DNA of 64,000 bases from positions 44,119,130 to 44,183,129 of the forward strand of contig NC_092375.1 of NCBI RefSeq assembly GCF_030028105.1, written 5' to 3'. The notes beneath the pieces were generated by a model. That model saw nothing but the letters and a program-made list of their open reading frames with translations, was not told the origin of the DNA and ran no database searches. The stretch comes from Mobula birostris. Taxonomy: Eukaryota. The translations under genes were made by a program, and so were the position numbers. Below, one piece after another: positions 8,942 through 57,950 of this stretch (its first letter is position 1; each line of letters begins with the position of its first letter).

Positions 8942-11900
8942 ATGGTTCAAAATACTAACTTATTTAGTTTGAATATGAAAGGGCTGAATCATCCCATTAA
9001 ACAGAACAAAGTGTTTGCTTATATTAAAAAATTAAAAGCACCCATTATTTTCTTACAAGAAACACAAATACGCAACTGTGATAGCTTACATTTGTTTACT
9101 CGGTGGAAGGGTATGCAGTTCCACTCTTCGTTTGATGGAAAATCACGTGAAGTTTTGATTTTTGTAGATAATAGCTTCCTTTGTTCAGCATACAGTTGTT
9201 TTGGATCCTAATGGTCGATTTGTTATTGTATCAGGGAGTTTAGACAGTAAATTGATTGTTTGCCAGATTTGTGTACTTACTGTCTTGTGATGGGAGGAGA
9301 TTTTAATTGCTGGTTAGATCCAGTATTAGATCACTCATCTGTCAAACCAGCCACACTTAATAAATCAGCTTTGTTTATCCAACCCTTTCTAACTAAATGT
9401 GGTATAGTTGATGTTTGGCATTTTCTTCATCCAACGGACAGGGAGTATTCTTTTTTCTCTCATGCCCATCATTCTTATACCAGGATTGATTATTTTTTTA
9501 TTGACAGTCAAATGATTCCATTGGTTCAATCGATCGAAAATAAAGAGATTGCTATTTCTGACCACTCTCCTGTACTTCTATCTTTAAATCTCCCTGGTTC
9601 TATCCCTATGAGTAGATTTTGGCGATTTAATTTAACTCTGCTATCCAATGAGGACTTTTTAAAACTTATGGAAAATCAAATTACTCTTTTTTTTTGAAGA
9701 AAATACTTCGGAAGAGACATCTTGTCTTATTATATGGGATACTTTTAAAGCATATATCCAGGGTCAAATTATGTCTTATACTGCAAATATCATTATAAAA
9801 GCTAACAAAGAGAGAAACGAACTAGCTATTCAGTTAAAACTGGACCATAAATATGCTTCGATACCCGACCCTGAAACATATAAGAGACGTATTGAAACCA
9901 AAACTAAATATGATCTTCTTTTCACCCATCCTATTGAAAGCCAGCTTATAAAAGATAGAAGTCAATTTTATATTCACGGAGATAAAACTGGTAAGCTACC
10001 GGTTAATCAATTGAAGCCATTTTTAGCCAAGTGGCAAATTAAAGAAATACCTAAAATTAATGGGGACATTAGTGAGAGTAAGAGTTCAGCACGGACTAGA
10101 AGGGCCGAGATGGCCTGTTTCCATGCTGTAATTGTTATATGGTTATACGACAAGTGACCACTCTGAAATTAATGACACTTTGAGGGAATTTTATTTCAAA
10201 ATGTATAGTTCTGACTCTGTTAAGGATAATATTGCAATGAATAATTTTTTAGATCAAGTGAATATTCCTAATCTTTCAATAGATGATCGTAGGCAATTGG
10301 ATTAACCCATTTCCCAGGAGGAAATTGCTCAGGCTATTCAAGAATTGCATTCTGGGAAATCCCCAGGATCCGATGGATTCTCTGCAGAGTTTTATAAGGC
10401 TTTTTCCTCCCTTATACCACACTTATGTTCTACCCTTACAGATTCCTTTAAGGTAGGAAGATTACCGCAGTCCTTTTTACAAAGCTTCCATTTCGCTTCT
10501 TCTCAAAAAGAATAAGAATCCTACTGAATGTTCTTCGTATAGACCTATCTCTTTACTCAGTTTTGATAACTAAAATTTTATCTAAAGTGTTGGATCGCAG
10601 ACTTGAAAATATTTTATCTTCTATAGTTTCGGATGATCAGACAGGATTTATTAAAAATCGATATTCCAATTTTAATATATGGCCTTTGTTAAATGTTATG
10701 CATTCTCCATCTAAGGAAATATCGGAATGTGTGATATCTTTGGATGCAGAGAAAGCCTTTGACAGAGTTGAATAGAATTTACATCCTTAGAAAAAAGTAA
10801 TTTTGGACCTAATTTTATTCATTGGATTAAATTACTTTATTTATCTCCCTCCGCTCGGGTCCTTACTAATCTTCAGAATTCTAAACCCCTTAAACTCCAC
10901 TGTGGAACTAGACAAAGTTGTCCTTTGAGCCCTCTGCTTTCTGATTTGGTATTAGAACCCTTAGCAATTGCTTTTCAAGTGTCTAAAGAGATTACTGGTA
11001 TTTTAAGGAGAGGTACTATCCATAAAGTGTCGCTCTATGCTGATGACTTATTGCTTTTTCTATCTAATGTTATAACCTCCTTACCATTTGTGTTTCGTTT
11101 ACTGACTAATTTTAGTCAGTTCTCAGGACATAAACTAAATTTACATAAAAGTAAACTGTTTCCTTTAAACAATTTAATACCAACTAATATTAACCTTCCT
11201 TTTAAAATTTAACAAAAACAATTTATGTATTTAGGAGTAACAATTACTAAGAAATATAAAGACTTATTAAAGGAAAATGTTTTAACTTTATTGAATTAAG
11301 TTAAAAAAGCACTTTCTAGTTGGTCGCCTCTCTATCTATCATTGATTGGCCAAATTAATTCTATTAAAATGAATATCTTACCTAAATTTATATACCTCTT
11401 TTCAAGCTGTGCCTGTTTTTATTCCTAAAACTTTTTTTGACTCTTTGGATTCAATTCTTTCTTCTTATAAATGGAAGAATACCAAACCTCTTATAAATAA
11501 AGCTCACCTTCAAAAAAAAACAAACAGAATGGTGGCTTTGCCTTACCCAACTTTAGCTTATATTATTGGGCAATTAATATACAAAATATTACGTTCTAGA
11601 TATATTACATTAACCATGAGAATTGCCCTATATGGGTTTCTTTGGAAGTCAAGTCTATTATGAAATTTTCCATTATTTCTTTACTTGGATCCTCACTTCT
11701 TTTATCTTTAAATAAGCTAACTGACAATCTGGTGGTCAAACATACTTTGAGGATTTGGTTACAGTTCAGAAAACATTTTGGTTTATTGAGATTCTCCCTC
11801 TCGAGCCTCATCTTTTCTAATTGTTTTTTAAACCATCTTTAATTGACTTATCTTTCAAAGAATGGGATAGATAGGGTATTAAACGATTTTAGCATTTGTT

Positions 11901-12715
11901 TGATGGAGAGAATCTCTTCTTTTTTGCAACTTTCAACGAAATTTAACCTTCGCAATACCCACTTTTTTCAATATTTACAGCTTAGAGATTTTTAAAGATC
12001 TCAATTACATACATTTCCTACAAGTCCAGATAAGGATAATAGATACAATTTTTAATCTGAAACCCTTTGACAACGGTTCAATATCTTACATTTATGGTCT
12101 GCTATTGGGACTGAAAAAGGCCTATTTAGACAAAATTAAAGGAGACTGGGAAAAGGATTTACAGATTTTCAAATCTGAAGAGAGCTGAAGATTATTTTAA
12201 AATTGATTAATTTTTCATCATTATGTGCTCGTCATTTTCTATTACAATGCAAAGTGGTACATAGAGTTCATATGTCTAAAGACAAGCTCTCTCGTTTCTA
12301 CGCAAATATTTCCCCTTACTGTGACAGATGTACTAATGGAATGGCCACACTAATTCATACGTTTTGGACATGTCTGAGCCTTGAAAAATTTTGGAAAGAT
12401 GTATTTCAAACTTTTTCTGTACTCTTCAATGTTACTTTTAAGCCCAATCCTTTGACTGCCATGTTTGGTATTGTCAAGGATAGCGCGACAAAACTGAAGC
12501 CATCTAATTTGCGGGTATTGGCCTTTATGTCTCTTATGGCCAGGAGGGTGATCTTGCTCAAGTGGAAGGAGACTGCCCCGCCCACTCATGCTCAATGGTT
12601 ATCTGATGTTATGTTATGCCTTGATATAGAGAAGATTCATTGTTCGATTTCTGGTTCAAAACGTGATTTTCTAATGTTATGGGGACCCTTTCTGAGTTAT
12701 TTTCATAATCTTTGA
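8942..12715 (+). pseudogene. L1 ORF2 (endonuclease/RT), multiply frameshifted
   Basis: Successive ORF pieces 8942, 9260, 9771, 10563, 10925, 11409, 11642, 12203 carry ordered L1 ORF2 motifs; a short CR1 3' tail is inserted at ~10075-10146. Confidence 0.88.
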
Positions 12716-14444: not shown

Positions 14445-14745
14445 TGTATCAGTCCTGAAGAAGGGTCTCGGCCCAAAACATCAATTGTTTACTCTCTTCC
14501 ACAGATGCCGCCTGACCTGCTAAGTTCCTCCAGCACTTAGTGAGTGTTGCTAGGGTAACATATAGGTACTTTGATAACTTCACTTTGACTTTGATCTCTG
14601 GAAGGAGATGGACAGTTGATATTTCAGGTCAACACTTGTTATCTGGATCCTTCAATCCAATGAATGGTCTTGACTCGAAACATCGACTGTCCATTTCCCT
14701 GCACAAATACTACCTGATCCACTGTGATCCGGCAGTCTGACCATA
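14445..14745. mobile_element. Penelope-like terminal repeat remnants
   Basis: cagtcctgaagaagggtctcggcccaaaacatc...cctgacctgctaagttcctccagca, plus further direct and inverted partial copies. Confidence 0.65.
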
Positions 14746-14749
14746 CATA

Positions 14750-15840
14750 GAAGCAGAAGTCGGACATTCAACCAATTAAGTCTGCTCTGCCATTTCATCA
14801 TGACTAATTTATTATCTCTCTCAATCACATTCCCATGCCTTCTCCTCGTAACATCTGACACCTTGACTCAACCCATCTCCATTTTAAACATAATGACTTG
14901 GCCTCCATAGCCACCTGTGGCAATAGATTCCACAGATTCATTTTCCCTCTGGCTAAAGAAATTTCTCTACATCTCTGTTCTAAATGGACGTCCCTTTATT
15001 CTGAGGCTGGGACCTCTAGTCCTAGGCTCACTCACGAAAAGAAACTTCCTCTCCAATTCCACTCTAAGCCTTTCAATATTTAATAGCTTTCAATGAGATC
15101 TCCCCCTCATTCTTCTAAACTCCAGCAAGTACATGCTCCTCATATGTTAACCCTTTCATTCCCAGAATCATTCCCATGAACCTCCTCTGGAGGAGCACAT
15201 CTTTTCTTGGATAAGGGGCCCAAAACTGCTCACAATACTCAAAGACCAGTCTGACCAATGCTTTATAAAGCCTCAGGATCACATCTTTTCTCTTATATTC
15301 TAGTCCTCTCCAGATGAATGCAAACATTGTATTCGCCTTCCTTATCACCAACTCACCCTGCAAGTTAACCTTGAGGGAATCCTGCAGCACTCCCAAGTCC
15401 CACTGCACCTCTGATTTTTGAATTTTCTCCCCATTTACAAAATAGTCTACGCTTTTATTCCTTCTACCAATGTGCATGACCGTACACTATATTCCATCTA
15501 TTCTAGCAACTTTTACGTGTGTTGCTATATTCCAACTGCCACTTTTTTGCTCATTGTCCCAAACTGTCTGTCCTTCTGTAGACTCCCTACTTCCTCAACA
15601 CTATCTGCCCTTGCACTAATCTTTGTATCATCCGCAGTCTTCGCCACAAAGCCATCAATTTCATCATCCAAATTATTGCAATAACATAAAAAGAAGCAGT
15701 CCCGATACCGACCCCTGCAGAGCATCGCTAGTCACCAGCTGCCAACCAGAGTAGGCCTCCTTTCTGCCAACTCTTTGCCTCCTGCCAGTCAGCCAATCAT
15801 CTATTCATGCTAGTATCTTTCTTGTAATACCATGGACTCT
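14750..15840 (-). mobile_element. CR1 LINE ORF2/3' fragment
   Basis: Minus-strand FVAK.ADDTKI, ILRLYKALVR..EYCEQFWAPY. Confidence 0.85.
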
Positions 15841-24450: not shown

Positions 24451-24829
24451 TTCCTAATACATGTAAACGTATATGGAGAATAAAGTTGAAGCTCAATCCT
24501 TGATTGGTTAGTCTACTATTTGAAAGGCTAGTTAGTCTACTTTTCAGAAGTATTTGGGGAGCCTTTGTATTTGATATAAAGAAATGTAACTTTTAGGAGT
24601 GAAAACTTCGCAATATACAAGCACAAATTTCAAAACCTTGCAAGACATACCTCTGTTTTGGGTTTAGAAGAATTTCTCAACACAAATGAAATAACACAAG
24701 AGCAGGACAAATAAACTGTAGCGGAGGATTGTCAATAAGTAATGCAAATTGGTTCCTATTTCTGGAATACAATAGATAAATGATCAGTCAGCATGTTTAG
24801 TATTTTGACATTCCATGTTGTTACAACCT

Positions 24830-25357
24830 ACACTCAGAAGCCACTCCATTAGGTGCACGTACACTTGCACATTAATGCAAATATCTAATCAGCCAATCGT
24901 GTGGCAGCAACTCAATGAATAAAAGCAGACATACATGGCCAAGAGATTCAGTTGTTGTTCAGACTAAACATCAGAAGGGGAAAGAAATGTGACTTTGACC
25001 CTGTTGATGCGAGACGGGGTAGTTTGGGTATTTCAGAAACTGCTGGTCTGCTGGGATTTTCACACACAAGTCTCTAGAGTTTACAAAGAATGGTGAAAAG
25101 GAGAATCCAGCGAGTGGCAGTTCTGTGAGTAAAAATGCCTTCTTAATGAGAGAGTTCAGAGGAGGATGGCTAGACTGGTTCAAGCTGACGGGGTGGTGAC
25201 AGTAATTCAGATAACCACACGTTATAACAGTGGGGTGCAGGAGAGCATCCCTGAATACACAACATGTCAAACCTTGAGGTGGAGGAGACCAGGAACATAA
25301 ACTCAGTGACAACTTTATTAGGTACAAGAGGTACATAATGATGTGACCACTGAGTGT
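24830..25357 (+). mobile_element. Tc1-like non-autonomous DNA transposon
   Basis: Termini tacactcag..ccact..attaggt / gtgaccactgagtgta; internal HTH-transposase remnant. Confidence 0.7.
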
Positions 25358-25369
25358 ACAGTCAGCCTT

Positions 25370-27128
25370 GATCATATCCTAATTGGAAGAGGGTCATAAG
25401 TATACGTACTGACATGGATAGAAAATTGGTTGGCAGACAGGCCCCCAACCAATACATAACTCTACTCTCCCCTCCTACCCTCCTCACAGCCCCCCACCCT
25501 GCTCTCATGACTACACCCCTTCCCCACATGAAACCACCACGGTGGGCTTCACAGCTGAACAGGTGAGAAGACAATTGAAACGTATCCATCCAAACAAGGC
25601 TACAGGCCTGGATGGTGTCAGCACCGGGGTGCTCAAAGCCTGTGCTCCCCAGCTATGTGGAGTACTCCACCATGTCTTCAACCTGAGCCTGAGTCTCCAG
25701 AGGGTTCCTGTGCTGTGGAAGACGTCCTGGCTCGTCCCTGTGCCGAAGACGCTGCGTCCCAGTGGCTTCAATGACTACAGACCGGTAGCATTGACCTCCC
25801 ACATCATGAAGACCCCGGAGAGGCTTGTTCTAGAGCAGCTCTGGCCTGTGGTTAGACCACACTTAGATCCCCTCCAGTTCGCCTACCAGCCCCGACTAGG
25901 AGTTGAGGATGCCATCGTCTTCCTGCTGAATCATGTCTATGTCCACCTGGACAAGCCAGCGAGCACTGTGAGGGTCATGTTTTTTGACTTCTCCAGTGCG
26001 TTCAACACCATCCGCCCTGCTCTGCTGGGGGAGAAGCTGACAGCGATGCATGTGGATGCTTCCCTGGTATCATGGATTCTTGATTACCTGACTGGCAGAC
26101 CACAGTACGTGTGCTTGCAACACTGTGTGTCAGACAGAGTGGTCAGCAGCACTGGGGCTCCACAGGAGACTGTCTTCTCTCCCTTTCTCTTCACCATTTA
26201 CACCTCAGACTTCAACTACTACACAGAGTCTTGCCATCTTCAGAAGTTTTCTGATGACTCTGCCATAGTTGGATGAATCAGCAAGGGAGATGAGGCTGAG
26301 TACAAGGCTACGGTGGGAAACTTGTGTCACATGGTGTGAGCAGAATTATCTGCAGCTTAATGTGAAAAAGACTAAGGAGCTGGTGGTGGACCTGAGGAGG
26401 GCTAAGGCACCAGTGAGCCCTGTTTCCATCCAAGGGGTCAGTGTGGACATGGTGGAGGATTACAAATGCCTGGGAATAAGAATTGACAATAAACTGGACT
26501 GGTCAAAGAACCCTGAGGCAGTCTACAAGAAGGGTCAGAGCCGTCTCTATTTCCTGAGGAGACTGAGGTCCTTTACCATCTGTCAGATGATGCTGAGGAT
26601 GTTCTACGGGTCTGTGGTGGCCAGTGCTATCAGGTTTGCAGTTGTGTGCTGGGGCAGCAGGCTGAGGGTAGCAGACACCAACAGAATCAACAAACTCATT
26701 TGTAAGGCCAGTGATGTTGTGGGGATGGAACTGGACTCTCTGACGGTGGTGTCTGAAAAGAGGATGTTGTCCAAGTTGCCTGCCATCTTGGTCAATGTCT
26801 CCCATCCTCTACATAATGTACTGGTTGGGCACAGGAGTACATTCAGCCAGAGACTCATTCCACCGAGATGCAACACTGAGCATCATAGGAAGTCATTCCT
26901 GCCTGTGGCTATCAAACTATACAACTCCTTCCTTGGAGGTCAGACACCCTGAGCCAATAGTCTGGTCCTGGACTTATTTCCATCTGGCATAATTTACATA
27001 TTATTATTTAATTATTTATGGTTTTATATTGCTATATTTATACTCTACTCTTGGTTGGTGCAACTGTAACGAAATCCAATTTCCCTCGGGATCAATAAAG
27101 TATGTCTATTTGTCTATCTATCTGTCTA
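25370..27128 (+). mobile_element. Rex1/Babar-like LINE, 5'-truncated, RT domain nearly intact
   Basis: ORFs 25542-26276 and 26269-26952 (LNDYRPVALTS-like, QFAYQP, FFDFSSAFNTI, LQKFSDDS); TGA at 26274-26276 plus a nearby 1-nt frameshift; aataaag + (TCTA)n tail. Confidence 0.9.
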
Positions 27129-28185
27129 TGAAACAAAGAGTAGGGATTAATGGGTCCTTTTCAGAACGGCAAGCAGTGACTAGTGGGGTACTGCAAGGCT
27201 TGGTGCTGGGACGGCAGCTATTTACAATATACATTAATGATTTAGATGAAGGAATTAAAAGCAACATTAGCAAATTTGCAGATGACACAAAGCTGGGTGG
27301 CAGTGTGAAATGTGAGGAGGATGTTATGAGAATGCAGGGTGACTTGGACAGGTTGGGTGAGGGGGCAGATGCAGTTTAATGTGCATAAATGTGAGGTTTT
27401 CCACTTTGGTGGCAAGAACAGGAAAGTAGATTACTATCTGAATGGTGTCAAGTTCGGAAAAGGGGAAGTACAACGAGATCTAGGGGTCCTTCTTCATCAG
27501 TCACTGAAAGTAAGCATGCAGATACAGCAGGCAGTGAAGAAAGCTAATGGCATGTTGGCCTTCATAAGAAAGGGAGTTGACTATAGGAGCAAAGAGGTCC
27601 TTCTGCAGTTGTACAGGGCCCTCATGAGGCCACACCTGGAGTATTGTGTACAGTTTTGGTCTCCAATTTGAAGAAGGACATTCTAGCTATTGAGGGAGTG
27701 CAGCGTAGGTTCACGAGGTTAATTCCCAGGATGTTGGGACTGTCATATGTTGAAAGATTGGGGCGACTGCGTTTGTATACACGGGAATTTAGAAGGATGA
27801 GAGGGTATCTGATTGAAACATATAAGACTATTAAGGGATTGGACACACTAGAGGCAGGAAACATGTTCCCAATGTTGGGGGAGTCCAGAACCAGAGGCCA
27901 CAGTTTAAGAGTAAGGGGTAGACCATTTAGAACGGAGTTGAGGAAAAACTTCTTCACACAGAGGGTTGTGGTTCTGTGGAATGCTCTGCCTCAGAAGGCA
28001 GTGGAGGCCAATTCTCTGGATTCTTTCCAGAAAGAGTTAGATAGAGCTCTTAAAGATAGTGGAGTCAAGGGATATGGGGAGAAGGCAGGAAAAGTGTACT
28101 GATTGTGGATGATCAGCCATGATCACAGTGAATGGTGGTGCTGGCTTGAAGGGCTGAATGGCCTACTCCTACACCTATTGTCTAT
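27129..28185 (+). mobile_element. CR1 LINE 3' ~1 kb
   Basis: [58 protein letters not shown]; CR1 tail at ~28180. Confidence 0.92.
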
Positions 28186-29366
28186 ATCATGAGTCATTAT
28201 TGTTTAATTGGACCAAAATCTCACATAGTAAATATGAAAACACAATTTTCAGGCTACGTTGAGGGTATTTCCCTCATTGTCTTGAGTTTGGAGATATTTT
28301 CTTTCAAAGCCTGTGAGTTCTATTTCTTCTTTCCATATCACAAATATTCCTGCAAGTTCCCAGTCATCTAATGTTTTTTGTGGGGATATTTGGACAGTGG
28401 AGTGAGCCAAAATGGTAAAATGTAAAAATATACCATTGAGAACTTCATCCTCTGGAATAAAGTCTGTTAAAAAAAAAAGAAATAGAATCATTAATTATTT
28501 AGAAATAAACTTACAGTAATAAGTATTTGACAGGCTTGATCATTGCCAGGATTTTCATTTCAGCACTGAATTCACCAGCTTTTACTCCTTGTGTTAGAAC
28601 TGGCCGATTCTGATGTGCAGACATCTGCTTCAACTCCACTTATATCTCTCAGCAGATGCAGCTTGGTCTGCTGGGTCTTTTAACGATGCAGATTTCCACA
28701 CAAGATGTCCTTTGCCTCCAAAAGACCCAGCACAGTATTTGTTTCCTATTCTTTCTCTCCTTATTTTCCATCGTTCTCCCATTATTAAACCACTCAGAAA
28801 GCATTGAATGACTTGCATACCCTTGGTCTCTACTATTTCACGGATGTTCTCTCTACCCACCCCTACTCTCAGATTTAAAACATACTTGTCTTCCAACTTC
28901 TCTGGTTCTCTCTACAGAATCCAATCTGGCCTACTGAGCATTTCCGGCATTTTCTGTTACTACGTGGATTTCATTATTGTGGTAAATGCAGGAGAGTTTG
29001 ATACTGCATGTTCACACTAACAGTCTTAAGCTGATCTTTCAAACAAAAATAAAACTACAAGCTAGATAATTGATATTGGACACAAGACAAACTATAGTTT
29101 TGAAGAAAGAACAAATGCAGTTTCAGCTGGATAATAATGCAGCTCAGAAGTATCTCTACCACTTAGGTCATACTCAATTGAATTTGTAAATTCGATTGCC
29201 ACTAGGTGAAAATCCCCACTAACTGCACAATCGGAGTCCCTTCACGAGAAGGTTCAGACTGCCTGGACATAACCTTCTCATGAGCACTTAAAGGACGGGT
29301 AACCATTGCCGATCTTTCTGGAAACCCATATCCTGATTTTGATAAACAACACCGAAAGATCAGATT

Positions 29367-32300
29367 AGAAACATAGAAAACCTACAGCACAGTACAGGTC
29401 CTTCAGCTCACAGTGCTGTGCCGAACATGTACTTACTTTAGAAATTACCTAGGGTTACCCATAGCCCTCTATTTTTCTAAGCTCCATGTACCCATCCAGG
29501 AGTCTCTTAAAAGACCCTATTGTATCTGCCTCCACCACAGTCGCCAAGTACCCATTCCATGCACTCACCACAATCTGCGTAAAAAACTTACCACTGACAT
29601 CCCTTCTGTACGTACTTCCAAGCACCTTAAAATTGTCCCTTCTCTATTAGTATTTTCAGCCCAGGAAAAAAGCCTCTGACTATCCACACGATCAATGCCT
29701 CTCATCATCTTATACACCTCTATCAGGACACCTCTCATCCTCCGTCGTTCCAAGGAGAAAAGGTAAGTTCACTCAACCTATTCTCATAAGGCATGCTCCC
29801 CAGTCCAGGCAATATCCTTGTAAATCTCCTCTGCACCCTTTCTATAGTTTCCACATCCTTCCTGTAGTGAGGTGACCAGAATTGTGTGCAGTACTCCAAG
29901 TGGGATCTGAGCAGGGTCCTATATAGCTGTAGCATTACCTCTCGGATCTTGAACTTAATCCCACGGTAGATGAAGGCCTATACACCGTATGTCTTCGTAA
30001 CCACAAAGACAACCTGTGCAACAGCTTTGAGTGCCCTATGGACTGGGAACCCAAGATCCCTCTAATCCTCCACACAGCCAAGAGTTTTACTGTTAATACT
30101 ATATTCTGCCATCAGATTTGACCTACCAAAATTAACCACCTCACAATTATCTGGGTTGAGTTCCATCTGCTACTTCTCAGCCCAGTTTTGCATCCTATCG
30201 ATGTCCCATTGTAAACTCTTGACAGCTGTCCACACTGTCCACAGCACCCCCAACCTTTGTGTCATCTGCAAATTTACTAACCCATCCCTCCACTTCCTCA
30301 TCCAGGTCATTTACAAAAATCACAAAGAGAAGGGGTCCCAGAACAGATCCCTGAGGCACACCACTGGTCACCAGCCTCCATGCAGAATATGATCCATCTA
30401 CAACCACTCTTTGCCTTCTGTGGGCAAGCCAGTTCTGGATCCACAAAGCAAGGTTCCTTTGGATCCCATACCTCCTTCCTTTCTCCATAAGCCTTGAATG
30501 GGGTAACTTATCAAATGCCCTGCTGAAATCCATATACACTACATCTACTGTTCTACCTTCATCAATGTGTTTAGTCACATCCTCACAAAATTCAAAAAGA
30601 CTTGTAAGGCATGACCTACCTTTGACAAAGCCATGCTGACTATTCCTAATCATATTCTGCCCCTCCAAATGTTCATAAATCCTGCCTCTCAGGATCTCCT
30701 CCATCAACTTACCAACCACTGAAGTAAGACTCACTGGTCTATAACTTCCAGGGCTATCTCTACTCCCTTTCTTGAATAAGGGAACAAGCTCTGCAACCTT
30801 CCAATCCTCCAGAACCTCTCCCATCCCCATGATGATGCAAAGATCATTGCAATCTCCTCCCTCGCCTCCCACAATAACCTAGGGTATATCTCATCCGGTC
30901 CCAGTGACTTAGCCAACCTGATGCTTTCCAAAAGCTCCAGCACATCCTCTTTCTTACTATCTATATGCTCAATCTTTTCAGTTCACTCTAAGTCATCCCT
31001 ACAATTGCCAATGTCTTTTTCCATAGTGAATACTGAAGCAAAAATACCTCCGTTACCTCCTCCGGTTCTATACACACTTTTTCACTGTCACATTTGATTG
31101 GTCCTATTCTTTAACATCTTATCCTCTTGCTCTTTACATACTTGTAGGATGCCTTGGGGTTTTCCTTAATCCTGCCCGCCAAGGCCTTCTCATGGACCCT
31201 TCTGGCTCTCCTAATTTCATTCTTAAGCACCATCATGACAGCCTTATAATTGTCTAGATCTCTATCATTACCTAGTTTTTTGAACCTTCCATAAGCTTTT
31301 CCTTTCTTCTTGACTAGATTTTCTACAGCCTTTGTACACTATGGGTCCTATACCCTACCATTTTTACCCTGTCTCATTGGAACGTACCTATGCAGAATGC
31401 CATGCAAATATCCACTGAACATTTGCCACATTTCTGCCGTACATTTCCCTAATAATATCTGTTCCCAATTTATGCTTCCAAGTTCCTGCCTGAGAGCTTC
31501 ATATTTCCATCTACTCCAATTAAATGTTGTCCTAACTTGTCTGCTCCTATCCCTCTCCAATGTTATGGTAAAACAGAGAATTGTAATCACTATATCCGAA
31601 ATGCTCTCCCACTGAGAGACCTGACACCTGACCAGGTTCATTTCCCAATAACAGATCAAGTACAGCCTCTCCTCTTGTAGGCTTATCTACATATTGTATC
31701 AGGAAACCTTCCTAAAGACACCTAACGAACTCCACCCCATCTAAACCCCTTGCTCTAGGGAGATGTCAATCAATATTTGGGAAATTGAAATTTCCCACCA
31801 CAACAACCTTGTTATTATTACACCTTTCCAGAATCTGCTTCCCTATCTGCTCCTCGATGTCCCTGTTACTATTGGGTGGTCTATAAGAAAACACCCAGTA
31901 GAGTTATTGACTCTTTCCTGTTTCTAACTTCCACCCACAGTGGATCAGTAGACAGTCCCTTCATGACTTCCTCCTTTTCTGCAGCTGTAACACTATCTCT
32001 GATCAACAGTGCAACGCCCCCACCTCTTTTGCCTCCCCCCCCCCGTTCTTTTGAAACATCTAAAGTCTGGCCCCCTAAGTAGCCATTCCTGCCTCTGAGT
32101 CATCCAAGTCTCTGTAATGGCCTCAACATTATAGCTCCAAATACTGATCCACGCTGTAAGTTCATCTGCTCTGTTCATGATACTCCTTGCATTAAAATAC
32201 ACATCTCAAACCATCAGTCTGAGTGCATCCCTTCTCTATCACCTGCCTATCCTCCCTCTCACACTGCCTACAAGCTTTCTCTATTTGTGAACCAACCACC

Positions 32301-33125
32301 CCTTCCTCGGTCTTTTCAGTTCGGTTCCCACCCTCCAGCAAATCTATTTTAAACTCTCCCCAATAGCCTTAGCAAACCTCCCTGCTTGGATATTAGTCCC
32401 CCTCGGATTCAAGTGTAACCCATCCTTATTGTGCAGATCATGCCTGTCCCAAAAGAGGTCCCAAAGCTACAGAAATCCGAATCCCTGCCCCTTGCTCCAA
32501 TCCCTCAGCACCTGAGAGGCAAATTACCATCCGTGTTTCTCGCCTGCGTCCACAGAATCGTCTGTCTGACCCCCTAACTATACAGTCCCCTGTCGCTGCT
32601 GCCATTCTCTTCCTTTCTCTGCCCTTCTGAGCCACAGGGCCAGACTCTGTGCCAGAGGCGCAGCCACTATTGCTTCCCCCAGGTAGGTCCCCCCCCCCAA
32701 CTGTACTCAGACAGAGGTACTTATTGTCAAGGGGGTGCAGCCACAGGGGTACTCTATAGTACCTGACTCTTACCCTTCCCTCTCCCAACTGTTACCCACT
32801 TATGTCTCCCGAGTCCCCCGTGTGACTACTTGCCTGTAGCTCCTCTCTATCACCTCCTCACTCAGATGAAAGTCATCAAACTGCATCTCCAGTTCCCTAA
32901 CCCGGTCCCTAAGGAGCTGCAGCTCAACACACCTGGGGCAGATGTGGCCATCCGGGAGGCTGGGAGTCTCCCGGGCATCTCACATTCGACACCGAGAACA
33001 GAACACCGGCCTCGCAGACATACTTCCCGTTTCTGTACTACACAAGTAACTTACCTCGCCTCGACCCGTTATCCCCGAAGCCCGGTTGAGCCAAAGCTCT
33101 CCTACTCTGGCACCCGTTCTATTAA
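29367..33125 (-). mobile_element. CR1 LINE, long degenerate copy (ORF1 esterase + ORF2)
   Basis: 3' tail agaaacatagaaaacctacagcac at 29367; RT ORF 30195-30872 ([35 protein letters not shown]); APE YFNARSI at ~32200; ORF1 SGNH IVRGSDRRFCG at ~32500. Confidence 0.9.
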
Positions 33126-33569
33126 GCTATTAGATTTGAAACTATTTCATAAACTTACCAGCCAGAAAAGATTCTGCAGATGCTGGAAATATTGATCAAC
33201 AGCACAGAAATTAAGGGAGGAATTTGGCAAATTCAAGTTTGCCAGAGCTGTTGGGGAGGATTTAAACTCATTTGGCAGGGGTAACGAGAACCGGAGGGAT
33301 CGGGATGAAAATGGGGCAGTTGGTATACAAGTCGATGCAGTGTGTAATAAGAATGCGAGGAAGGACAGGCAAATGATAGGGCAAAATTACAGTCAGTGGG
33401 TGAGTTGCCCTATAACATGGAGCAAAATCAGAAAATGTGACCAATAGAGGGCACAGCGAAGGATGTTGGCCCAAAACGTCCACTGTACTTTTTTCCATAG
33501 ATACTGCCTGGCCAGCTGAGTTCCTCCAGCTTTTTGTATCTGTTGCTCGGGTTTCCGGCATCTGCAGAT

Positions 33570-33975
33570 GAGGGTTAACTTATGAGGAGCGTTTGATGGC
33601 TCTGGCCCTGTACTTGCCGGAGTTTAGAAGAGGGGCGGGGGTGCGGTGGGGATCTCATTGAAACGTAATGAATATCGAAAGATTTGGACAGAGTGGATGT
33701 GGAATGGAGGTTTCCTAAGGTGGGTGTGTGTAGGACCAAAGGCCACAGCCTCAAAAGAGAGGGACGTCCATTTAGAACGGAGATGAGGAGGAATTTCTTT
33801 AGCCAGTGGGTGGTGAATCTGTGAAGTCCAAGTCAAGATTATATTTAAAGAAGTTCTTGATTAGTCAGGGCGTCAAAAGTAACGGGGAAAAGACAGGATG
33901 AATGGGGTTGAGAGGGATAATAAATCAGCCACGATGTAATGGCGGAACAGACTCGATGGCGTTAATTCTGCCTCG
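33570..33975 (+). mobile_element. CR1 LINE 3' fragment
   Basis: gagggttaacttatgaggagcg...tttagccagtgggtggtgaatctgtg...aaatcagccacgat. Confidence 0.75.
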
Positions 33976-34076
33976 ATGTTTTTATGGTCCTAAGTCAGGC
34001 GGGATCTATGGAAAGGAATGAACGGTCAACTCTTCGCGCCGAGACGCTGCATCGGGACTGCAAAGGATGGGGGCAT

Positions 34077-34171
34077 TTATGTGTTGATCATAGACTCTTG
34101 GTTATAAGCAAGTATCACGAGGGTCGGGAACCCGGGAACGATAGAAATTAGGACACTGGCAGCGGTGATAT
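34077..34171 (-). CDS. Transmembrane/short-tail exon of the VJ-type gene
   Basis: Acceptor cctcctttctttctAG; (D)ITAASVLISIVPGFPTLVILAYNQESMINT*. Confidence 0.65.
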
Positions 34172-34296
34172 CTAGAAAGAAAGGAGGTCATGCCTAGTTT
34201 ACAATGTGCCCTCTCGTGCTTGAAGGTAATAAAATACTAGTCTGATATGTGATTTACAAAAATTATATGGGGCTTTTAGTCGCCATTCTACCCTAC

Positions 34297-34651
34297 CTGC
34301 AACCGCAACAGTCAGCTGAGTTCCGAAGCCCTGAATATTCTTGGAGAACGAAGTGATAGCGTTGCAATAATATGTCCCGCTGTCTGCAAACTCAAGGTTA
34401 TTTATTAATCGTCAAGGTGCTATTGAAACTTGAAGAATTAGTTCCAAACACACTGATGCGACCATCTCCACTCTTGGTGCTGATGTTTCTCGCGTACAAA
34501 TCACCAGAGATCTCTTTAGTAAAATGCCAATAAAAGCTACCATTTACCAACTCTCCCTTGTCTTGTAAAGTACAGCTGAAGGAGGCAGAATCCCCTACCA
34601 GCAGCCGGAGCGATCGGGGAGTTTGCTGCAAATCCAGTCCGGTGGCAGCAC
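34297..34651 (-). CDS. V-domain exon with germline J-like segment (355 bp = 351 + 4-bp duplication)
   Basis: Acceptor tgtattgtgatAG, donor GCAG|GTAGGG. LDLQQTP..GDSASFSC..SFYW..GRI..STLTIN/NLEFADSGTYYC..QGFGTQLTV; four N-x-S/T sequons. Confidence 0.88.
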
Positions 34652-34756
34652 CTATCACAATACAGCTCGTTAAAGTTGCAAGTAGCAAACAGCAAACATA
34701 ATAATTACACATTAAGTGTGAACAATTGTGTGTCGCTTTGAATCTATTATACTTAC

Positions 34757-34787
34757 AGATTGCTACCAGGACCAGAATGGTGATCAT
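34757..34787 (-). CDS. Leader exon MITILVLVAI(C)
   Basis: ATG at 34787, donor T|GTAAGT at 34756; spliced signal peptide MITILVLVAICAATG. Confidence 0.85.
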
Positions 34788-37764: not shown

Positions 37765-38875
37765 GTGCAATCAAGTCAATCAAGATTTGAATAGTTCAGC
37801 AGAAAGCCGTTCATTAGACAATCAAGATTTGAATAGCTCAGACTCAGCAGAAAGCAGCTGATTGGGCAATCGAAGTCAGGTGACCAAGCATTTTGAAAAG
37901 CTCAGATAAATAGAGGGGTAGATCAAGCGGAGCGGCCAGTGAGTGAGTGGGCCAGTGAAGGAGTGGAGCTTTGAGGCTTTGACACGAGAGGCTTCCACGA
38001 GAAGAGGCGGAGGACAAGCTTGTTCCCGGTTATTCTTTAATGTCTCCTGAGACGGTAATGTGCTTCTCATGTGGGATGTGGCAGTCTTGGGGGAACTCCC
38101 CTCTCCCGCAGAGTCACATCTGCCAGAAGTGCATATGGCTGGGCCATCTGGAAGACCATGTAAGGAACCTGGAGCAGCACCTGGATGACCTTCGACTCAT
38201 AAGGGAGAATGAGGCAGTCATAGATGAGAGCTACAGGGAGGTAGTCACACCTAGGCTGTCGGAAGCAGGTCGTTGGGTGACAGTCAGAGGGGGGAAAGCG
38301 AAGGTGAGCAGACAGGTAGTGCAGAGCACCACTGTAGCCATTCCCCTGAATAATAAGTTTACCATTCTGGATACTGTTGGTGGGGTTGACCAACCAGGTG
38401 TGAGCCACGGTGGCAGGGCCTCCGGCACAGAGTCTGAGCTGGTGGAGCAGAAGCGTGGGATGGAGAAGAGGACAGCTGTTGTCATTGGAGATTCTATAGT
38501 CAGGGGAGCAGACAGGAGATTTTGTGGACGTGAGAAGGACACCTGCATGGTTTGTTGCATCCCAGGTGCCAGGGTCCGGGATGTCTCTGACTGGGTGCAC
38601 GACATCCTGGTACGAGAGGGAAAGCAACCAGAAGTCGTGATACATGTTGGGACCGACGACATAGGCAGGAAGAGGGATGAGGTCCTGAAGTGTGAGTTTC
38701 GGGAAATAGGCAGAAGGCTGAAGAACAGGACCTCAAGGGTGGCATTCTCAGGATTGCTGCTAGGGCTACGTGACAATGATGGTAAGAATTGGAGGAGATG
38801 GCAGTTGAATGCGTGGCTGAGGAGTTGGTGCAGGGAGCAGGATTTTAGATTTTTGGATCATTGGGATCATTTTTG
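37765..38875 (+). mobile_element. CR1 5' UTR + ORF1 (zinc finger, coiled coil, SGNH esterase)
   Basis: ORF 38040-38876: CFSC..CQKC, VIGDSIVRG, PGARVRDV, VIHVGTDD. Confidence 0.9.
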
Positions 38876-39997
38876 ACTTCTGCAGTGCGTTCAACACCAT
38901 CCGCCCTGCTCTGCTGGGGGAGAAGCTGACAGCGATGCAGGTGGATACTTCCCTAGTATCATGGATTCTTGATTACCTGACTGGCAGACCACAGTACATG
39001 TGCTTGCAACGCTGTGTGTCGGACAGAGTGATCAGCAGCACTGGGGCTCCACAGGGGACTGTCTTGTCTCCCTTTCTCTTCACCATTCACACCTCAGACT
39101 TCAACTACTGCACGGAGTCTTGTCGTCTTCAGAAGTTTTCGGATGACTCTGCCATAGTTCGATGCATCAGCAAGGGAGATGAGGCTGAGAACAGGGCTAT
39201 GGTAGGAAACTTTGTCACATGGTGTGAGCAGAATTATCTGCAGCTTAATGTGAAAAAGACTGAGGAGCTGGTGGTAGACCTGAGGAGAGCTAAGGTAGCA
39301 GTGACCCCTGTTTCCATCCAGGGGGTCAGTGTGGACATGGTGGAGGTTTACAAATACCTGGGGATACGAATTGACAATAAGCTGGACTGGTCAAAGAACA
39401 CTGAGGCTGTCTACAAGAAGGGCCAGAGCCGTCTCTATTTCCTGAGGAGACTGAGGTCCTTTAACATCTGCTGTACGATGCTGAGGATGTTCTACGAGTC
39501 TGTGGTGGCCAGTGCTATCATGTTTGCTGTTGTGTGCTTGGGCAGCAGGCTGAGGGTGGCAGACACCAAGAGAACCAACAAACTCATTCGTAAGGCCAGT
39601 GATGTTGTGGGGATGGAACTGGACTCTCTCATGGTGGTGGCTGAAAAGAGGATGCTGTCTAAGTTGCATGCCATCTTGGTCAATGTCTCCCATCCACTAC
39701 ATAATGTACTGGTTGGGCACAGGAGTACATTCAGCCAGAGACTCATTCCACCGAGATGCAGCACTGAGCGTCATAGGAAGTCATTACTGCCTGTGGCCAT
39801 CAAACTTTACAACTCCTCCCTTGGGGGGTCAGACATCCTGAGCCAATAGGCTGGTCCTGGACTTATTTCATAATTTACTAGCATAATTTACTTATTACTA
39901 TTTAACTATATATGGTTCTATTACTATTTATTATTTATGGAGCAACTGTAACGAAAACCAATTTCCCCCGGGATTAATAAAGTATGACTATGACTAT
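38876..39997 (+). mobile_element. Rex1/Babar-like LINE 3' 1.1 kb with open RT C-terminal ORF
   Basis: ORF 38935-39849 (304 aa; GAPQGTVLSP, LQKFSDDS); (atgact) tail; close relative of 25370-27128. Confidence 0.9.
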
Positions 39998-51694: not shown

Positions 51695-52982
51695 ATACTC
51701 AGTGGTCACTTTATTGGTACAGGAGGTGCCTACTAAAGTGGCCACTGATTGAATGTCCATGGTCTTCTGTTGCTATAGCCCATCCACTTCGAAGTTTGAC
51801 TTGCTGTGTGTTCAGAAATGCTCTTCTGCACACCACTTTTGAGTTATTTGAGTTACTGTCACCTTCCCATCAATTTGAACCAATCTGGCCATTCTCCTCT
51901 GACCTCCATCACTAGCAAGGCATTTTTGCCCACAGATCTCCCTTCACTGGATGTTTTTTTTAAAAAAATATTTGTTTCTTTTTTGCACCATTCTCTGTAA
52001 ACTTTGAACTCTTAAACTCTAAGAGCCTGTGTATAGAAACATAGAAAATAGGTGCAGGAGTAGGCCATTCGGCCCTTCGAGCCTGCACCGCCATTTATTA
52101 TGATCATGGCTGATCATCCAACTCAGAACCCCGCCCCAGCCTTCCCTCCATACCCTCTGATCCCCGTAGCCACAAGGGCCATATCTAACTCCCTCTTAAA
52201 TATAGCCAATGAACTGGCCTCAACTGTTTCCTGTGGCAGACAATTCCACAGATTCACCACTCTCTGTGTGAAGAAGTTTTCCCTAATCTCGGTCCTAAAA
52301 GGCTTCCCCTTTATCCTCAAACTGTGACCCCTTGTTCTGGACTTCCCCAACATCGGGAACAATCTTCCTGCATCTAGCCTGTCCAATCCCTTTAGGATTT
52401 TATACGTTTCAATCAGATCCCCCCTCAATCTTCTAAATTCCAATGAGTACAAGCCCAGTTCATCCAGTCTTTCTTCATATGAAAGTCCTGCCATCCCAGG
52501 AATCAATCTGGTGAACCTTCTTTGTACTCCCTCTATGGCAAGGATGTCTTTCCTCAGATTAGGGGACCAAAACTGCACACAATACTCCAGGTGTGGTCTC
52601 ACCAAGGCCTTGTACAACTGCAGTAGTACCTCCCTGCTCCTGTACTCGAATCCTCTCACTATAAATGCCAGCATACCATTCGCCTTTTTCACCGCCTGCT
52701 GTACCTGCATGCCCACTTTCAATGACTGGTGTATAATGATGTGCATGAAAATCCCAGGAGATCAGCAGTTTCTGAGATGTTCAAAGTATCTCACCTGGCA
52801 TGAACAATCATTCTATGGACAAAATCACTTAGATCATATTAATTCCCCATTCTGATGTTGGTCTGAGCAACAACTGAACACCTTGACCTTGTCTGCATGC
52901 TTTTATGCACTGAGTGGCTGCCACAATTGACATTAATGAGCAGGTGTACTGGTGTACCTAACAAACTGGCCACTGAGAGTAA
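51695..52982 (-). mobile_element. Tc1-like non-autonomous element split by a CR1 insertion
   Basis: tactcagtggtcactttatt start; ..ctaagagcctgtgtat| resumes |gtgcatgaaaatcccaggagatcagcag; end ggccactgagagta. Confidence 0.7.
52034..52739 (-). mobile_element. Young CR1 3' fragment (open 207-aa ORF2 C-terminus)
   Basis: Uninterrupted ORF 52123-52746; tail tagaaacatagaaaataggtgcagg. Confidence 0.95.
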
Positions 52983-53106: not shown

Positions 53107-54654
53107 ATGGTCTGCATCCCACAGTGCTTCAGGAAGTAGCCCAAGAAATAGCGGATGCATTAGTGATAATTTTTCAAAACTCTTTAGATTCTGGACTAGT
53201 TCCTGAGGATTGGAGGGTGGCTAATGTAACCCCACTTTTTAAAAAAGGAGAGAGAAACCAGGGAATTATAGACCAGTTAGCCTAACATCGGTGGTGGGGA
53301 AAATGCTAGAGTCAGTTATCAGAGATGTGATAACAGCACATTTGGAAAGCGGTGAAATCATCGGACAAAGTCAGCATGGATTTGTGAAAGGAAAATCATG
53401 TTGACGAATCTCAGAATTTTTTGAGGATGTAACTAGTAGAGTGGATAGGGGAGAACCAGTGGATGTGGTATATATTTGGATTTTCGATAGGCTTTTGACA
53501 AGGTCCCACACAGGAGATTAGTGTGCAAACTTAAAGCACACGGTATTGGGGGTATGGTATTGATGTGGATAGAGAATTGGTTGGCAGACGGGAAGCAAAG
53601 AGTGGGAATAAACGGGACCTTTTCAGAATGGCAGGCAGTGACTAGTGGGGTACCGCAAGGCTCAGTGCTGGGACCCCAGTTGTTTACAATATATATTAAT
53701 GACTTAGACGAGGGAATTAAATGCAGCATCTCCAAGTTTGCGGATGACACGAAGCTGGGCAGCAGTGTTAGCTGTGAGGAGGATGCAGGGTGACTTGGAT
53801 AGGTTAGGTGAGTGGGCAAATTCATGGCAGATGCAATTTACTGTGGATAAATGTGAGGTTATCTACTTTGGTGGCAAGAACAGGAAAACAGATTATTATC
53901 TGAATGGTGGCCGATTAGGAAAAGGGGAGGTGCAATGAGACCTGGGTGTCATTATACACCAGTCATTGAAAGTGGGCATGCAGGTACAGCAGGCGGTGAA
54001 AAAGGCAAATGGTATGCTGGCATTCATAGCAAGAGGATTAGAGTACAGGAGCAGGGAGGTACTACTGCAGTTGTACAAGGCCTTGGTGAGACCACACCTG
54101 GAGTATTGTGTGCAGTTTTGGTCCCCTAATCTGAGGAAAGACATCCTTGCCATAGAGGGAGTACAAAGAAGGTTCATCAGATTGATTCCTGGGATGGCAG
54201 GGCTTTCATATGATGAAAGACTGGATTGACTAGGCTTCTACTCTCTGGAATTTAGAAGATTGAGGGGGGATCTGATTGAAATGTATAAAATCCTAAAGGG
54301 ATTGGACAGGCTAGATGCAGGGAGATTATTCCCGATGTTGGGGAAGTCCAGAACGAGGGGTCACAGTTTGAGGATAAAGGGGAAGCCTTTTAGGATCGAG
54401 ATGAGGAAAAACTTCTTCACACAGGGAGTGGTGAATCTGTGGAATTCTCTGCCACAGGAAACAGTTGAGGCCAGTTCATTGGCTATATTTAAGAGGGAGT
54501 TAGATATGGCCCTTGTGGCTAAAGGGATCAGGGTGTACGGAGAGGAGGCAGGTACAGGGTTCTGAGTAGGACGATCAGCCATGATCATACTGAATGGCGG
54601 TGCAGCCTCAAAGGGCCGAATGGCCTACTCCTGCACCTATTTTCTATGTTTCTA
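53107..54654 (+). mobile_element. CR1 3' 1.5 kb, same subfamily as 52034-52739
   Basis: [43 protein letters not shown]; tail cctattttctatgtttcta. Confidence 0.95.
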
Positions 54655-56101: not shown

Positions 56102-57950
56102 TTGTGATGGTGAAAACATTTCATGATCCTGTCATTCATTTAACAACCGCCTCCATGTATCCATGGTGTCAATTATGGACAGCAGCAGTAGTTCAGGCTC
56201 ATCCATGGGACGAAATTCGATGGCAATATATTCAGAATGAACTTGAGCATTGCTTGAGAGTCTTCAGGAGTTGAATTACAGATACAAGAACACAGCTGCA
56301 GTCCTTTTCTTCAGGGCTGTTTTCATAGAAACCAATGGCTGGTTCTCTCAATGTCCTTGGATTTTTTCAACCTGTCTTTCACAGCCTGAATGTCAATCTC
56401 AGTGATATGAAATATGGTTTGCAAAGTAAGTTCACTGTATCTTTCCTGCATTGGTGTTCTTTGACATTTTGTTTTAGCTCCAGTTACAGTATTCAGTGCC
56501 TACTTAACATTGTTCCCTGGTTCTAAGTGTTCACTAAGCTGCTTCTCCCGTGAGGAACATATGTGATTCCATTTCAAAGTGGCTTATTGTAACTATCAAA
56601 TAATGGAGATGATGATCAGATTCTGATGTATTTTTCTTTATTCATTTATATGATGAAGGCATTAGTGACAAAGATCAACGTTTACTGCAACACTAACTAC
56701 TTTTGAAAAGGTACTCTTCTAGTTAGGGTTTATGCTGGTAAAAAGAGATTGTAGGCAAGATCATCATCCAGAAAACTGCACAATGGATTTATGGGCATTT
56801 GTGTATACATGCTCAGTCTACAACATTAAGGATGTACTTATGTACTGCTCTCTAAAGCAAGAAAATCTCAGTGCCTGCTTCAGATATTGAACATTCCAGA
56901 AACTAGACTTTGCAATGATAATACAGGAGGAATTAAATCATCAGGGTGGTGTGCAACCTGCCTTTTCAAAATTCCCTCTCTTAATACATGAGGGTTTTGC
57001 ATTTGGACCTGGAGATTTTCATGTAATTGAAGACATTAATCAAAATAACACCTGATCCTTGTATTAATCATTTCACAATCCTATTCAATTAATTAATTCA
57101 ATTATTTTTATTAATCACTTAAATACAGGAAAAGAGGAAAGGAATTAAAATGAAGTAAAATAAAATGCCTCATGTTTCCATCTTTGCAAATAATTGTAGA
57201 CTGAACTTTCTTCAGTAATAATCGTAGAAACAGTATACAGCATATAGCTATGGCTATGTACACTTGTACATACCACCAAGCAGTATTTTTACTTGCTCTT
57301 ACCTAACAGTCTTCAGATATACACAAATCACAATACTTGATTCACAGAGTTGGTTCCAACCCGAAAAATTTACCCCACTTTAGAGACCACTCACTGACCA
57401 TGATTCAAATGAGTGGTCTTCCTGAAAATCTATCACCTCTTCCAGTTTTGTTTTCATCTACCAGAGATATAAAATCACATTGCTCTAATTTTGGTTAATT
57501 ACAGTCACTTATAGTAGGAACACTACAGCACAGAGACATGTCCTTCAGCCTATCTAGACCAGACCAATTTATTCTGTCTAGTCCCATCAATGTGCCATGG
57601 CCCTCCGTGCACCTCCCATCTATACACATATACAAAATTCACCTAAATATTGAAACCAAACCTACATCTACCAATTCCACTAGCAGTGGTAATTCCTTAA
57701 TCCCTTACTCCAATGCTGCAACAACACCTCTAAGGGTCTTACTATGTGACCATAAAATCCAGCAAGAAAACTAGTTTTAGTTCAACCTTAACATATATTG
57801 GATTAGCCATTTTGATTAACAAAGCTGCAAATGTTTTTAAACCAAAAAACCAGAAATAAGAAAACAGTAAGTCAAATAATATCACTGAGCAGAGAGGCAT
57901 ATCCAGCCATCCCTATTAAGGTTCCAAAACCGGAAAAAATAACAAACTAA

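Follow-up and report, generated by a model that had tools for sequence, protein, structure and literature searches.

The NKp30/B7-H6 pair is the textbook example of a VJ-type receptor that co-evolves with a B7-family ligand, and the co-evolution of NKp30 and B7H6 is reportedly the conclusion of Flajnik et al. (2012), as worded in the title of that study. NKp30 (NCR3) comprises one IgV domain and a transmembrane (TM) arginine that couples it to CD3-zeta or FcR-gamma (PMC6514059). It is treated as an MHC-linked VJ gene, lying in class III in mammals and also linked to the MHC in sharks (PMC10751288, PMC12227049), for which several NCR3 genes have been reported (accessions MT914154-61, cited in PMC12227049). 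There is an active search in cartilaginous fish for VJ genes that do not rearrange, as relics of the period before RAG rearrangement (PMC12227049, PMC10751288). For example, UrIg and UrIg2 are non-rearranging, single-exon VJ genes of elasmobranchs, located in MHC, MHC-paralogous or antigen-receptor regions, and their products are secreted, antibody-like proteins with several C1 domains (PMC12227049). The gene described here was found in a 64-kb stretch of DNA from Mobula birostris (the window). Like UrIg and UrIg2, it is a single-exon VJ gene without rearrangement; unlike them, it consists of V and TM parts only, and no C1 exon for it was found in the window. Architecturally, its predicted product is built like NKp30, with one VJ-type IgV domain, a TM arginine and a minimal tail. 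The locus probably represents one copy of an elasmobranch receptor family, small and as yet without a name, whose members are non-rearranging, of VJ type and adaptor-dependent; the predicted gene has three exons, an arginine-containing TM segment and a four-residue tail.

The whole receptor gene lies on the minus strand, as do the two B7-type exons that flank it. The leader exon (34787-34757, 31 nt) has its ATG at 34787 with 10 hydrophobic codons after it, encodes MITILVLVAI plus 1 nt, and ends in phase 1 at a GTAAGT donor. It is separated from the V exon by an intron of 105 nt, and the corresponding locus of the shark Chiloscyllium plagiosum agrees in leader length, in phase and in having a first intron of ~100 nt. 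The VJ-type IgV exon (34651-34297) has a phase-1 acceptor and donor and is 355 nt long, which is one base too long. Its contents include a Cys, an NGS sequon, YWH, RNIS, DGRIS, DSGTYYC and GFGTQLTV, and its 3' end reads GCA G/GTAGGG, which is phase 1. The J-like G strand QGFGTQLTV (34330-34307, minus strand, pattern GxGTxLxV) is contiguous with the V part, and no CACAGTG-type heptamer of a recombination signal sequence (RSS) occurs in 34200-34700, in agreement with a sequence-only reading of this DNA, which had described a V exon ending in a J-like strand without an RSS. The features of a rearranging V gene, namely an RSS, a separate J segment and C exons, are thus replaced here by a contiguous V and J and a V exon that splices to a predicted TM exon.

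The extra base of the V exon lies inside AATAAATAAC (34398-34409, minus strand), in the E-F loop, where this +1 frameshift produces an in-frame TAA at 34400-34398. The first frame of the exon therefore runs for 83 codons up to this TAA, and the remaining 37 codons (LINNLEFADSGTYYCNAITSFSKNIQGFGTQLTVAVA) are in the next frame. In a DNA alignment with the intact V exon of C. plagiosum, which is either an orthologue or a paralogue, AATAAATAAC has four bases more, corresponding to one codon and one base. Both frame pieces separately match Pfam V-set, the first at 5e-4 (profile positions 1-78) and the second at 1.9e-6 (profile positions 77-108). Apart from the frameshift, the window copy has an undamaged start codon and stop codon, and its splice sites, its two cysteines, its J motif and its TM arginine are all preserved. 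Its predicted product is a truncated protein of 93 residues, provided that the extra base is not an artefact of assembly. Over 114 codons aligned with the C. plagiosum V exon, dN/dS is ~0.28, with dS at ~1.4 and thus close to saturation, suggesting that the sequence evolved as a coding gene and that its one frameshift either arose recently or is artefactual. We lean towards a very young pseudogene; that the frameshift is an assembly indel is a serious possibility.

The relatives of this V domain were sought by an exhaustive HMMER search of 1.84 billion representative proteins with the 83-residue V piece, which gave 27 matches at E<=1e-3, including just two small single-V proteins. These are XP_043556870 from C. 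plagiosum (automatically named "CD8 beta chain-like"; 52% identity, E 3e-14) and XP_078088791 from Mustelus asterias (uncharacterized; 47% identity, E 1e-11). Three word-index protein searches, with the V piece in a 129-aa open reading frame, with XP_043556870 and with the family alignment, gave nothing beyond both relatives and one teleost NITR-like protein. The likeness of both shark proteins to the window copy consists of the 47-52% V-domain identity, the sequons and a set of motifs common to all three sequences: NGS-x-YWH, RN(I/V)S, D-x-RI, D-x-G-x-YYCN and G-x-G-x-x-L. They differ from the window copy in that both are intact and have a CDR3 that is 3 residues longer, and the Mustelus protein has in addition ~7 extra residues between the V domain and the TM segment.

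The third exon of the gene lies far from the V exon. A conserved terminal exon (24761-24664, minus strand) encodes a short stalk, a TM helix with an arginine (LLTILRYSLFVLLLCYFICV) and the tail EKFF, followed by a stop codon at 24666-24664, its full translation being E-IGTNLHYLLTILRYSLFVLLLCYFICVEKFF-stop. The arginine is located in the outer third of the TM helix, the stalk has ~8 residues and the tail has 4. The acceptor of this exon consists of a polypyrimidine tract and AG, in phase 1 and in frame with the V-exon donor. In tblastn, the exon matches the C-terminus of the Mustelus protein XP_078088791 (56% identity over 32 aa, E 9e-7), and its stop codon is at the position identical to that in XP_078088791. 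A self-tblastn of the 64-kb window revealed no paralogous copy of the V, B7 or TM exons. The Mustelus gene spans 7.4 kb for 171 codons. The match to the distal exon, the shared stop position, the single V exon in the window and the Mustelus gene span together lead to a main model made of leader, V and distal TM exons, for a predicted gene of ~10.1 kb rather than 711 bp, with a coding length, disregarding the extra base, of ~160 codons. The sequence-only reading had proposed a leader/V/TM gene of 711 bp; its leader and V exons are real, whereas its TM exon was mis-assigned, the conserved one lying 9.5 kb further on.

The V-TM intron of this model (24762-34296, 9.5 kb) contains LINE debris throughout, including two RVT_1 fragments (25422-26273, plus strand; 30198-30878, minus strand) and a LINE C-terminal domain named ALKBH8_N in Pfam (26269-26949, plus strand). 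Elsewhere in the window, a further LINE remnant (37983-39846, plus strand) has an open reading frame resembling a GDSL lipase/esterase (E 6e-9) directly upstream of an open reading frame with RVT_1 and the ALKBH8_N-named domain.

The C. plagiosum locus has the same leader/V exon layout as the window gene. By contrast, the RefSeq model of XP_043556870 ends in a non-TM exon (C. plagiosum locus 12283-12429), a point which weighs against the distal-exon model. Neither the 3' end of this RefSeq model nor the name "CD8 beta chain-like" given to it seems dependable. Two assembly gaps are near in this locus. In the same locus, ~160 nt past the V exon, a weak and non-significant look-alike of the Arg-TM exon is present (10650-10742, plus strand; 32% identity over the full length), with Trp in place of Arg.

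The window gene is flanked by B7-type exons on both sides. The upstream one (63011-62742, minus strand, phase 1/1) is a B7/butyrophilin-type IgC exon, which contains CRSSGWYPAPEVTW, matches Pfam PF22705 (C2-set_3) at 1.3e-14 and has BTN2A1 as its best solved relative (1.3e-8). The downstream one (815-474, minus strand, phase 1/1) is a B7/butyrophilin-type IgV exon, which matches Pfam V-set at 3.2e-10; its best solved relatives are CD276 (3e-9), VTCN1 (9e-9), MOG and PD-L1 (E 3e-9 to 4e-7), and its nearest ESM Atlas clusters are butyrophilins. The two exons thus present the features of B7/butyrophilin genes (an IgV domain, an IgC domain of C2-set_3 type and phase-1 boundaries), with VTCN1, B7-H3 and BTN all being candidate subfamilies. 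The position of the receptor gene between a B7-type IgC exon and a B7-type IgV exon on the same strand, as first read from the sequence, is borne out by the Pfam and PDB matches, with all three on the minus strand. The proposal that the receptor gene is nested in a B7 intron is unlikely, with the IgC exon preceding and the IgV exon following it on that strand. The normal order in a B7 gene is V then C. Because the minus-strand order is IgC, receptor gene, IgV, the reverse of V then C, the receptor gene would be flanked by two B7 genes rather than nested in one, and the IgC and IgV exons most likely belong to two different B7 genes. They may alternatively be parts of one gene of V-C-V-C type, as in 4Ig-B7-H3, with an intron of 62 kb. 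A possible last exon of the upstream B7 gene was noticed at 57114-57302 (minus strand), where a hydrophobic segment (YIAIAICCILFLRLLLKK) is followed by a tail of ~30 residues and a stop codon overlapping AATAAA. The only phase-1 acceptor of this segment has a poor pyrimidine tract, and we place little confidence in it; if it were real, the upstream B7 gene would end ~22 kb before the receptor gene, a conclusion held with the same low confidence.

A similar neighbourhood is found in Mustelus asterias, where the gene of the relative (7.4 kb, 171 codons) has a TRIM45-like gene on one side and a B7 gene on the other, both neighbours being judged by their Pfam content. The upstream neighbour encodes 571 residues with RING, B-box and filamin domains, which we take to be the TRIM45 domain set. 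The downstream neighbour is a V-set + C2-set_3 gene on the same strand, starting 10 kb away. No exon of B7 or TRIM45 type was detected in the 10 kb on either side of the C. plagiosum gene, a range that is uninformative given distances of 24-28 kb in the window. Of the linkage to B7 genes expected in other elasmobranchs, the Mustelus part appears to hold, with the relative beside a V-set + C2-set_3 B7 gene, whereas the C. plagiosum flanks lack B7, though they are too short. In the human genome, TRIM45 is a direct neighbour of VTCN1 at 1p13, which is an MHC-paralogous region.

The build of the window gene invites comparison with NKp30/NCR3, with which it shares a single-exon VJ-type IgV domain, the lack of an RSS, a TM arginine, a motif-free tail and a thematic link to B7 ligands. 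It differs in having a shorter stalk (~8 residues), in being frameshifted and in having no detectable specific similarity to human NKp30. In a phmmer search of all PDB chain sequences with the 83-residue piece, shark VNARs (6e-5) and TCR-alpha V were on top, and in an hmmsearch of the PDB sequences with the family profile, the leading matches were TCR-alpha V (1e-9), TCR-mu, VNAR (6e-9) and Ig-kappa. Human NKp30 was absent among the 60 matches listed for four PDB sequence searches. Compared with the PDB sequences, the central 58 residues, which contain the GS..W, RN and GR motifs, gave only chance matches to non-Ig proteins and not one Ig domain at E<=10, and the same was true of residues 38-100 of XP_078088791. 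The alignment with NKp30 made earlier by eye, which relied in part on these central motifs, is therefore statistically undetectable, NKp30 being absent among the 60 PDB matches listed and the central motifs having no Ig match.

Structure comparison was based on an AlphaFold model of the XP_043556870 V domain (11-row alignment, pLDDT 76.6), while a model of full-length XP_078088791 (5-row alignment, pLDDT 51) was set aside. In a Foldseek search of the Swiss-Prot models, TCR-alpha V, CD8-beta, TCR-gamma V, CD79b and Ig-kappa were placed above NCR3, which appeared at ranks 11 (rat, 24% identity) and 17 (macaque, 31% identity, the highest among the top 30 matches); these leaders and NCR3 are all within an E-value band of ~tenfold. 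In the PDB, the top five Foldseek matches were all VNAR. Among the AlphaFold DB fold clusters, the NCR3 cluster was at rank 8, and in the ESM Atlas the nearest structural cluster was annotated as "putative Antigen receptor" (TM 0.81/0.89), followed by PD-1, CTLA-4 and TCR-alpha. Comparison of predicted structures thus does retrieve NCR3, at ranks 11 and 17, but amid equally good VJ domains. Since NCR3 is undistinguished in both the sequence and the structure searches, the V domain would be a generic VJ-type, antigen-receptor-like V, with NKp30 as a candidate relative. What survives of the original description as an NKp30-like VJ receptor is the build, with one IgV, no RSS, a TM arginine and a short tail, the last two supplied by the distal exon; sequence similarity specific to human NKp30 was not detected among the PDB matches listed.

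An alternative, which we consider unlikely but deserving of attention, is that the gene is a true member of NKp30/NCR3, namely a paralogue in the MHC-paralogous TRIM45/VTCN1 region, with the neighbouring B7 genes being B7-H6-like ligands. It would account for the shared architecture (PMC6514059), and the Foldseek ranks of NCR3, the macaque identity topping those of the first 30 matches and the rank of the NCR3 cluster in the AlphaFold DB are all consistent with it, as are the co-evolution of NKp30 with B7H6 and the presence of several NCR3 genes in sharks. The sequence searches argue against it, with human NKp30 missing among the 60 PDB matches listed and the central part of the domain having no Ig match at E<=10, and so do the equal or better scores of TCR-alpha V, VNAR, CD8-beta, CD79b and Ig-kappa. 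The location also differs, the locus not being the MHC: the window holds B7/BTN-type exons and LINE debris only, and the family lies beside TRIM45-like and VTCN1/B7-H3/BTN-like genes rather than in MHC class III. Assignment to a separate elasmobranch family of adaptor-dependent VJ receptors is preferred.

A second alternative concerns the 3' end of the gene. Close to the V exon lies a proximal hydrophobic exon (34171-34077, minus strand; D-ITAASVLISIVPGFPTLVILAY-NQESMINT-stop), which starts 125 nt past the V exon at a phase-1 AG acceptor and encodes a hydrophobic stretch of 22 residues without a charged TM residue, followed by an 8-residue tail. If the compact 711-bp transcript of leader, V and this uncharged TM exon were real, its product would be a non-signalling or decoy receptor, and the distal Arg-TM exon would be left over from a further copy that has since been lost. 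The canonical phase-1 acceptor so near the V exon, with 22 hydrophobic residues and then a stop, is what such a transcript would need. Hydrophobic open-reading-frame stretches of this quality occur in the window at 0.17 per kb per frame, so that the chance of one in the right frame within ~0.2 kb is ~3%, small without being negligible, and this figure weighs against the distal-exon model. On the other hand, no counterpart of the proximal exon was found in XP_043556870, XP_078088791 or the C. plagiosum locus, whereas conservation of the distal exon extends even to where its stop codon lies, and this exon is in phase with the V exon, the only one in the window that it could serve, and the Mustelus gene, with its 7.4 kb for 171 codons, points to a long intron there too. 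The NKp30-type, adaptor-dependent build is likewise provided by the distal exon (24761-24664) and not by the proximal one. This alternative is accordingly very unlikely as a whole, and under the main model of leader, V and distal TM exons the proximal exon is possibly an alternative last exon or a product of chance. A copy of a dispersed repeat (33700-34060) ends ~17 nt past the stop codon of the proximal exon; further copies are at 14450-15055, 27865-27978, 52247-52302 and 54386-54441, and the repeat is also present in the C. plagiosum locus.

A third alternative would make the gene a non-rearranging relative of the TCR-alpha and IgNAR V-type domains, that is, a relic VJ gene that is kin to the exon invaded by RAG and not of NK-receptor type. 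The resemblance is real in so far as these domains are the best sequence and structure matches and share the Q-(T/S)-P start of strand A, D-S-G-x-Y-Y-C and G-x-G-T-x-L. Thus, the N-terminal half of the V domain has shark VNARs (6e-5) and TCR-alpha V as its best PDB matches, the family profile finds TCR-alpha V at 1e-9 and VNAR at 6e-9, the top five Foldseek matches in the PDB are VNAR, and the nearest ESM Atlas cluster is the "putative Antigen receptor" one (TM 0.81/0.89). Such matches are however given by any VJ-type domain, and VNAR is over-represented among solved shark proteins. IgNAR V and TCR-alpha V are rearranged by RAG, are joined to C domains and have a different C-C' region, whereas in the window gene a single germline exon already contains both V and J and is followed directly by a predicted TM exon, and YWH... 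stands in place of the canonical WY(R/K)Q-PG C-C' segment of TCR and Ig. The window gene also has no C1 exon, whereas the known relics UrIg and UrIg2 are of VJ-C1 type (PMC12227049). An antigen-receptor relic is therefore highly improbable. Strands A to C of the V domain (34500-34630, minus strand; QQTPRS...SFSCTLQD...GSFYWHFTKE) are closest in the PDB to shark IgNAR V (6e-5, ~45% identity over 46 residues), and VNARs also lead the Foldseek PDB and ESM Atlas matches, a likeness that reflects either kinship or general VJ-type character. Identity with CD8 beta, which has a long stalk with a cysteine, an uncharged TM segment, a cytoplasmic tail and a gene beside CD8A, was rejected on architecture (a stalk of ~8 residues, a TM arginine and a 4-residue tail), the neighbours of the Mustelus relative moreover being B7- and TRIM45-type genes and not CD8A, and the Foldseek score of CD8-beta being no better than that of TCR V.

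For the preferred family of adaptor-dependent VJ receptors, the architecture suggests how an intact member might work. The protein would have no signalling capacity of its own, and its TM arginine would pair with the TM aspartate of an ITAM adaptor of the FcR-gamma or CD3-zeta type. Surface expression and signalling would then depend on that adaptor, and through this arginine-dependent pairing the receptor would be an activating one, as NKp30 is. Its ligand may, speculatively, be found among the neighbouring VTCN1/B7-H3/butyrophilin-like B7 proteins, a suggestion that comes from the position of the gene and from the precedent of NKp30 and B7-H6. A more specific proposal is that of an elasmobranch family of activating VJ receptors located beside VTCN1 (B7-H4)-like genes downstream of TRIM45, in which receptor and ligand genes were duplicated together as cassettes and the receptor binds the neighbouring B7 protein; in this full form, it is distinctly improbable.

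If true, this proposal would add a second surviving primordial linked pair of VJ receptor and B7 ligand from the proto-MHC, besides NKp30/B7-H6, and would suggest a concrete lineage of candidates for the B7-H4 counter-receptor; in mammals, the receptor of B7-H4 has yet to be identified (PMC13212089). What is new here, to judge from sequence, would be the presence of a VJ-type, adaptor-dependent single-V receptor at a B7-rich locus, a gene of otherwise known kind. The window copy, with its reading frame broken, derives its value from marking the family and the receptor/B7 arrangement and not from being functional itself. A VJ-TM family of its own, with an anchor of activating type and a place by TRIM45 among VTCN1/B7-H3/BTN-like genes, would constitute a new non-MHC example, and would render the idea of a primordial receptor-ligand linkage testable.
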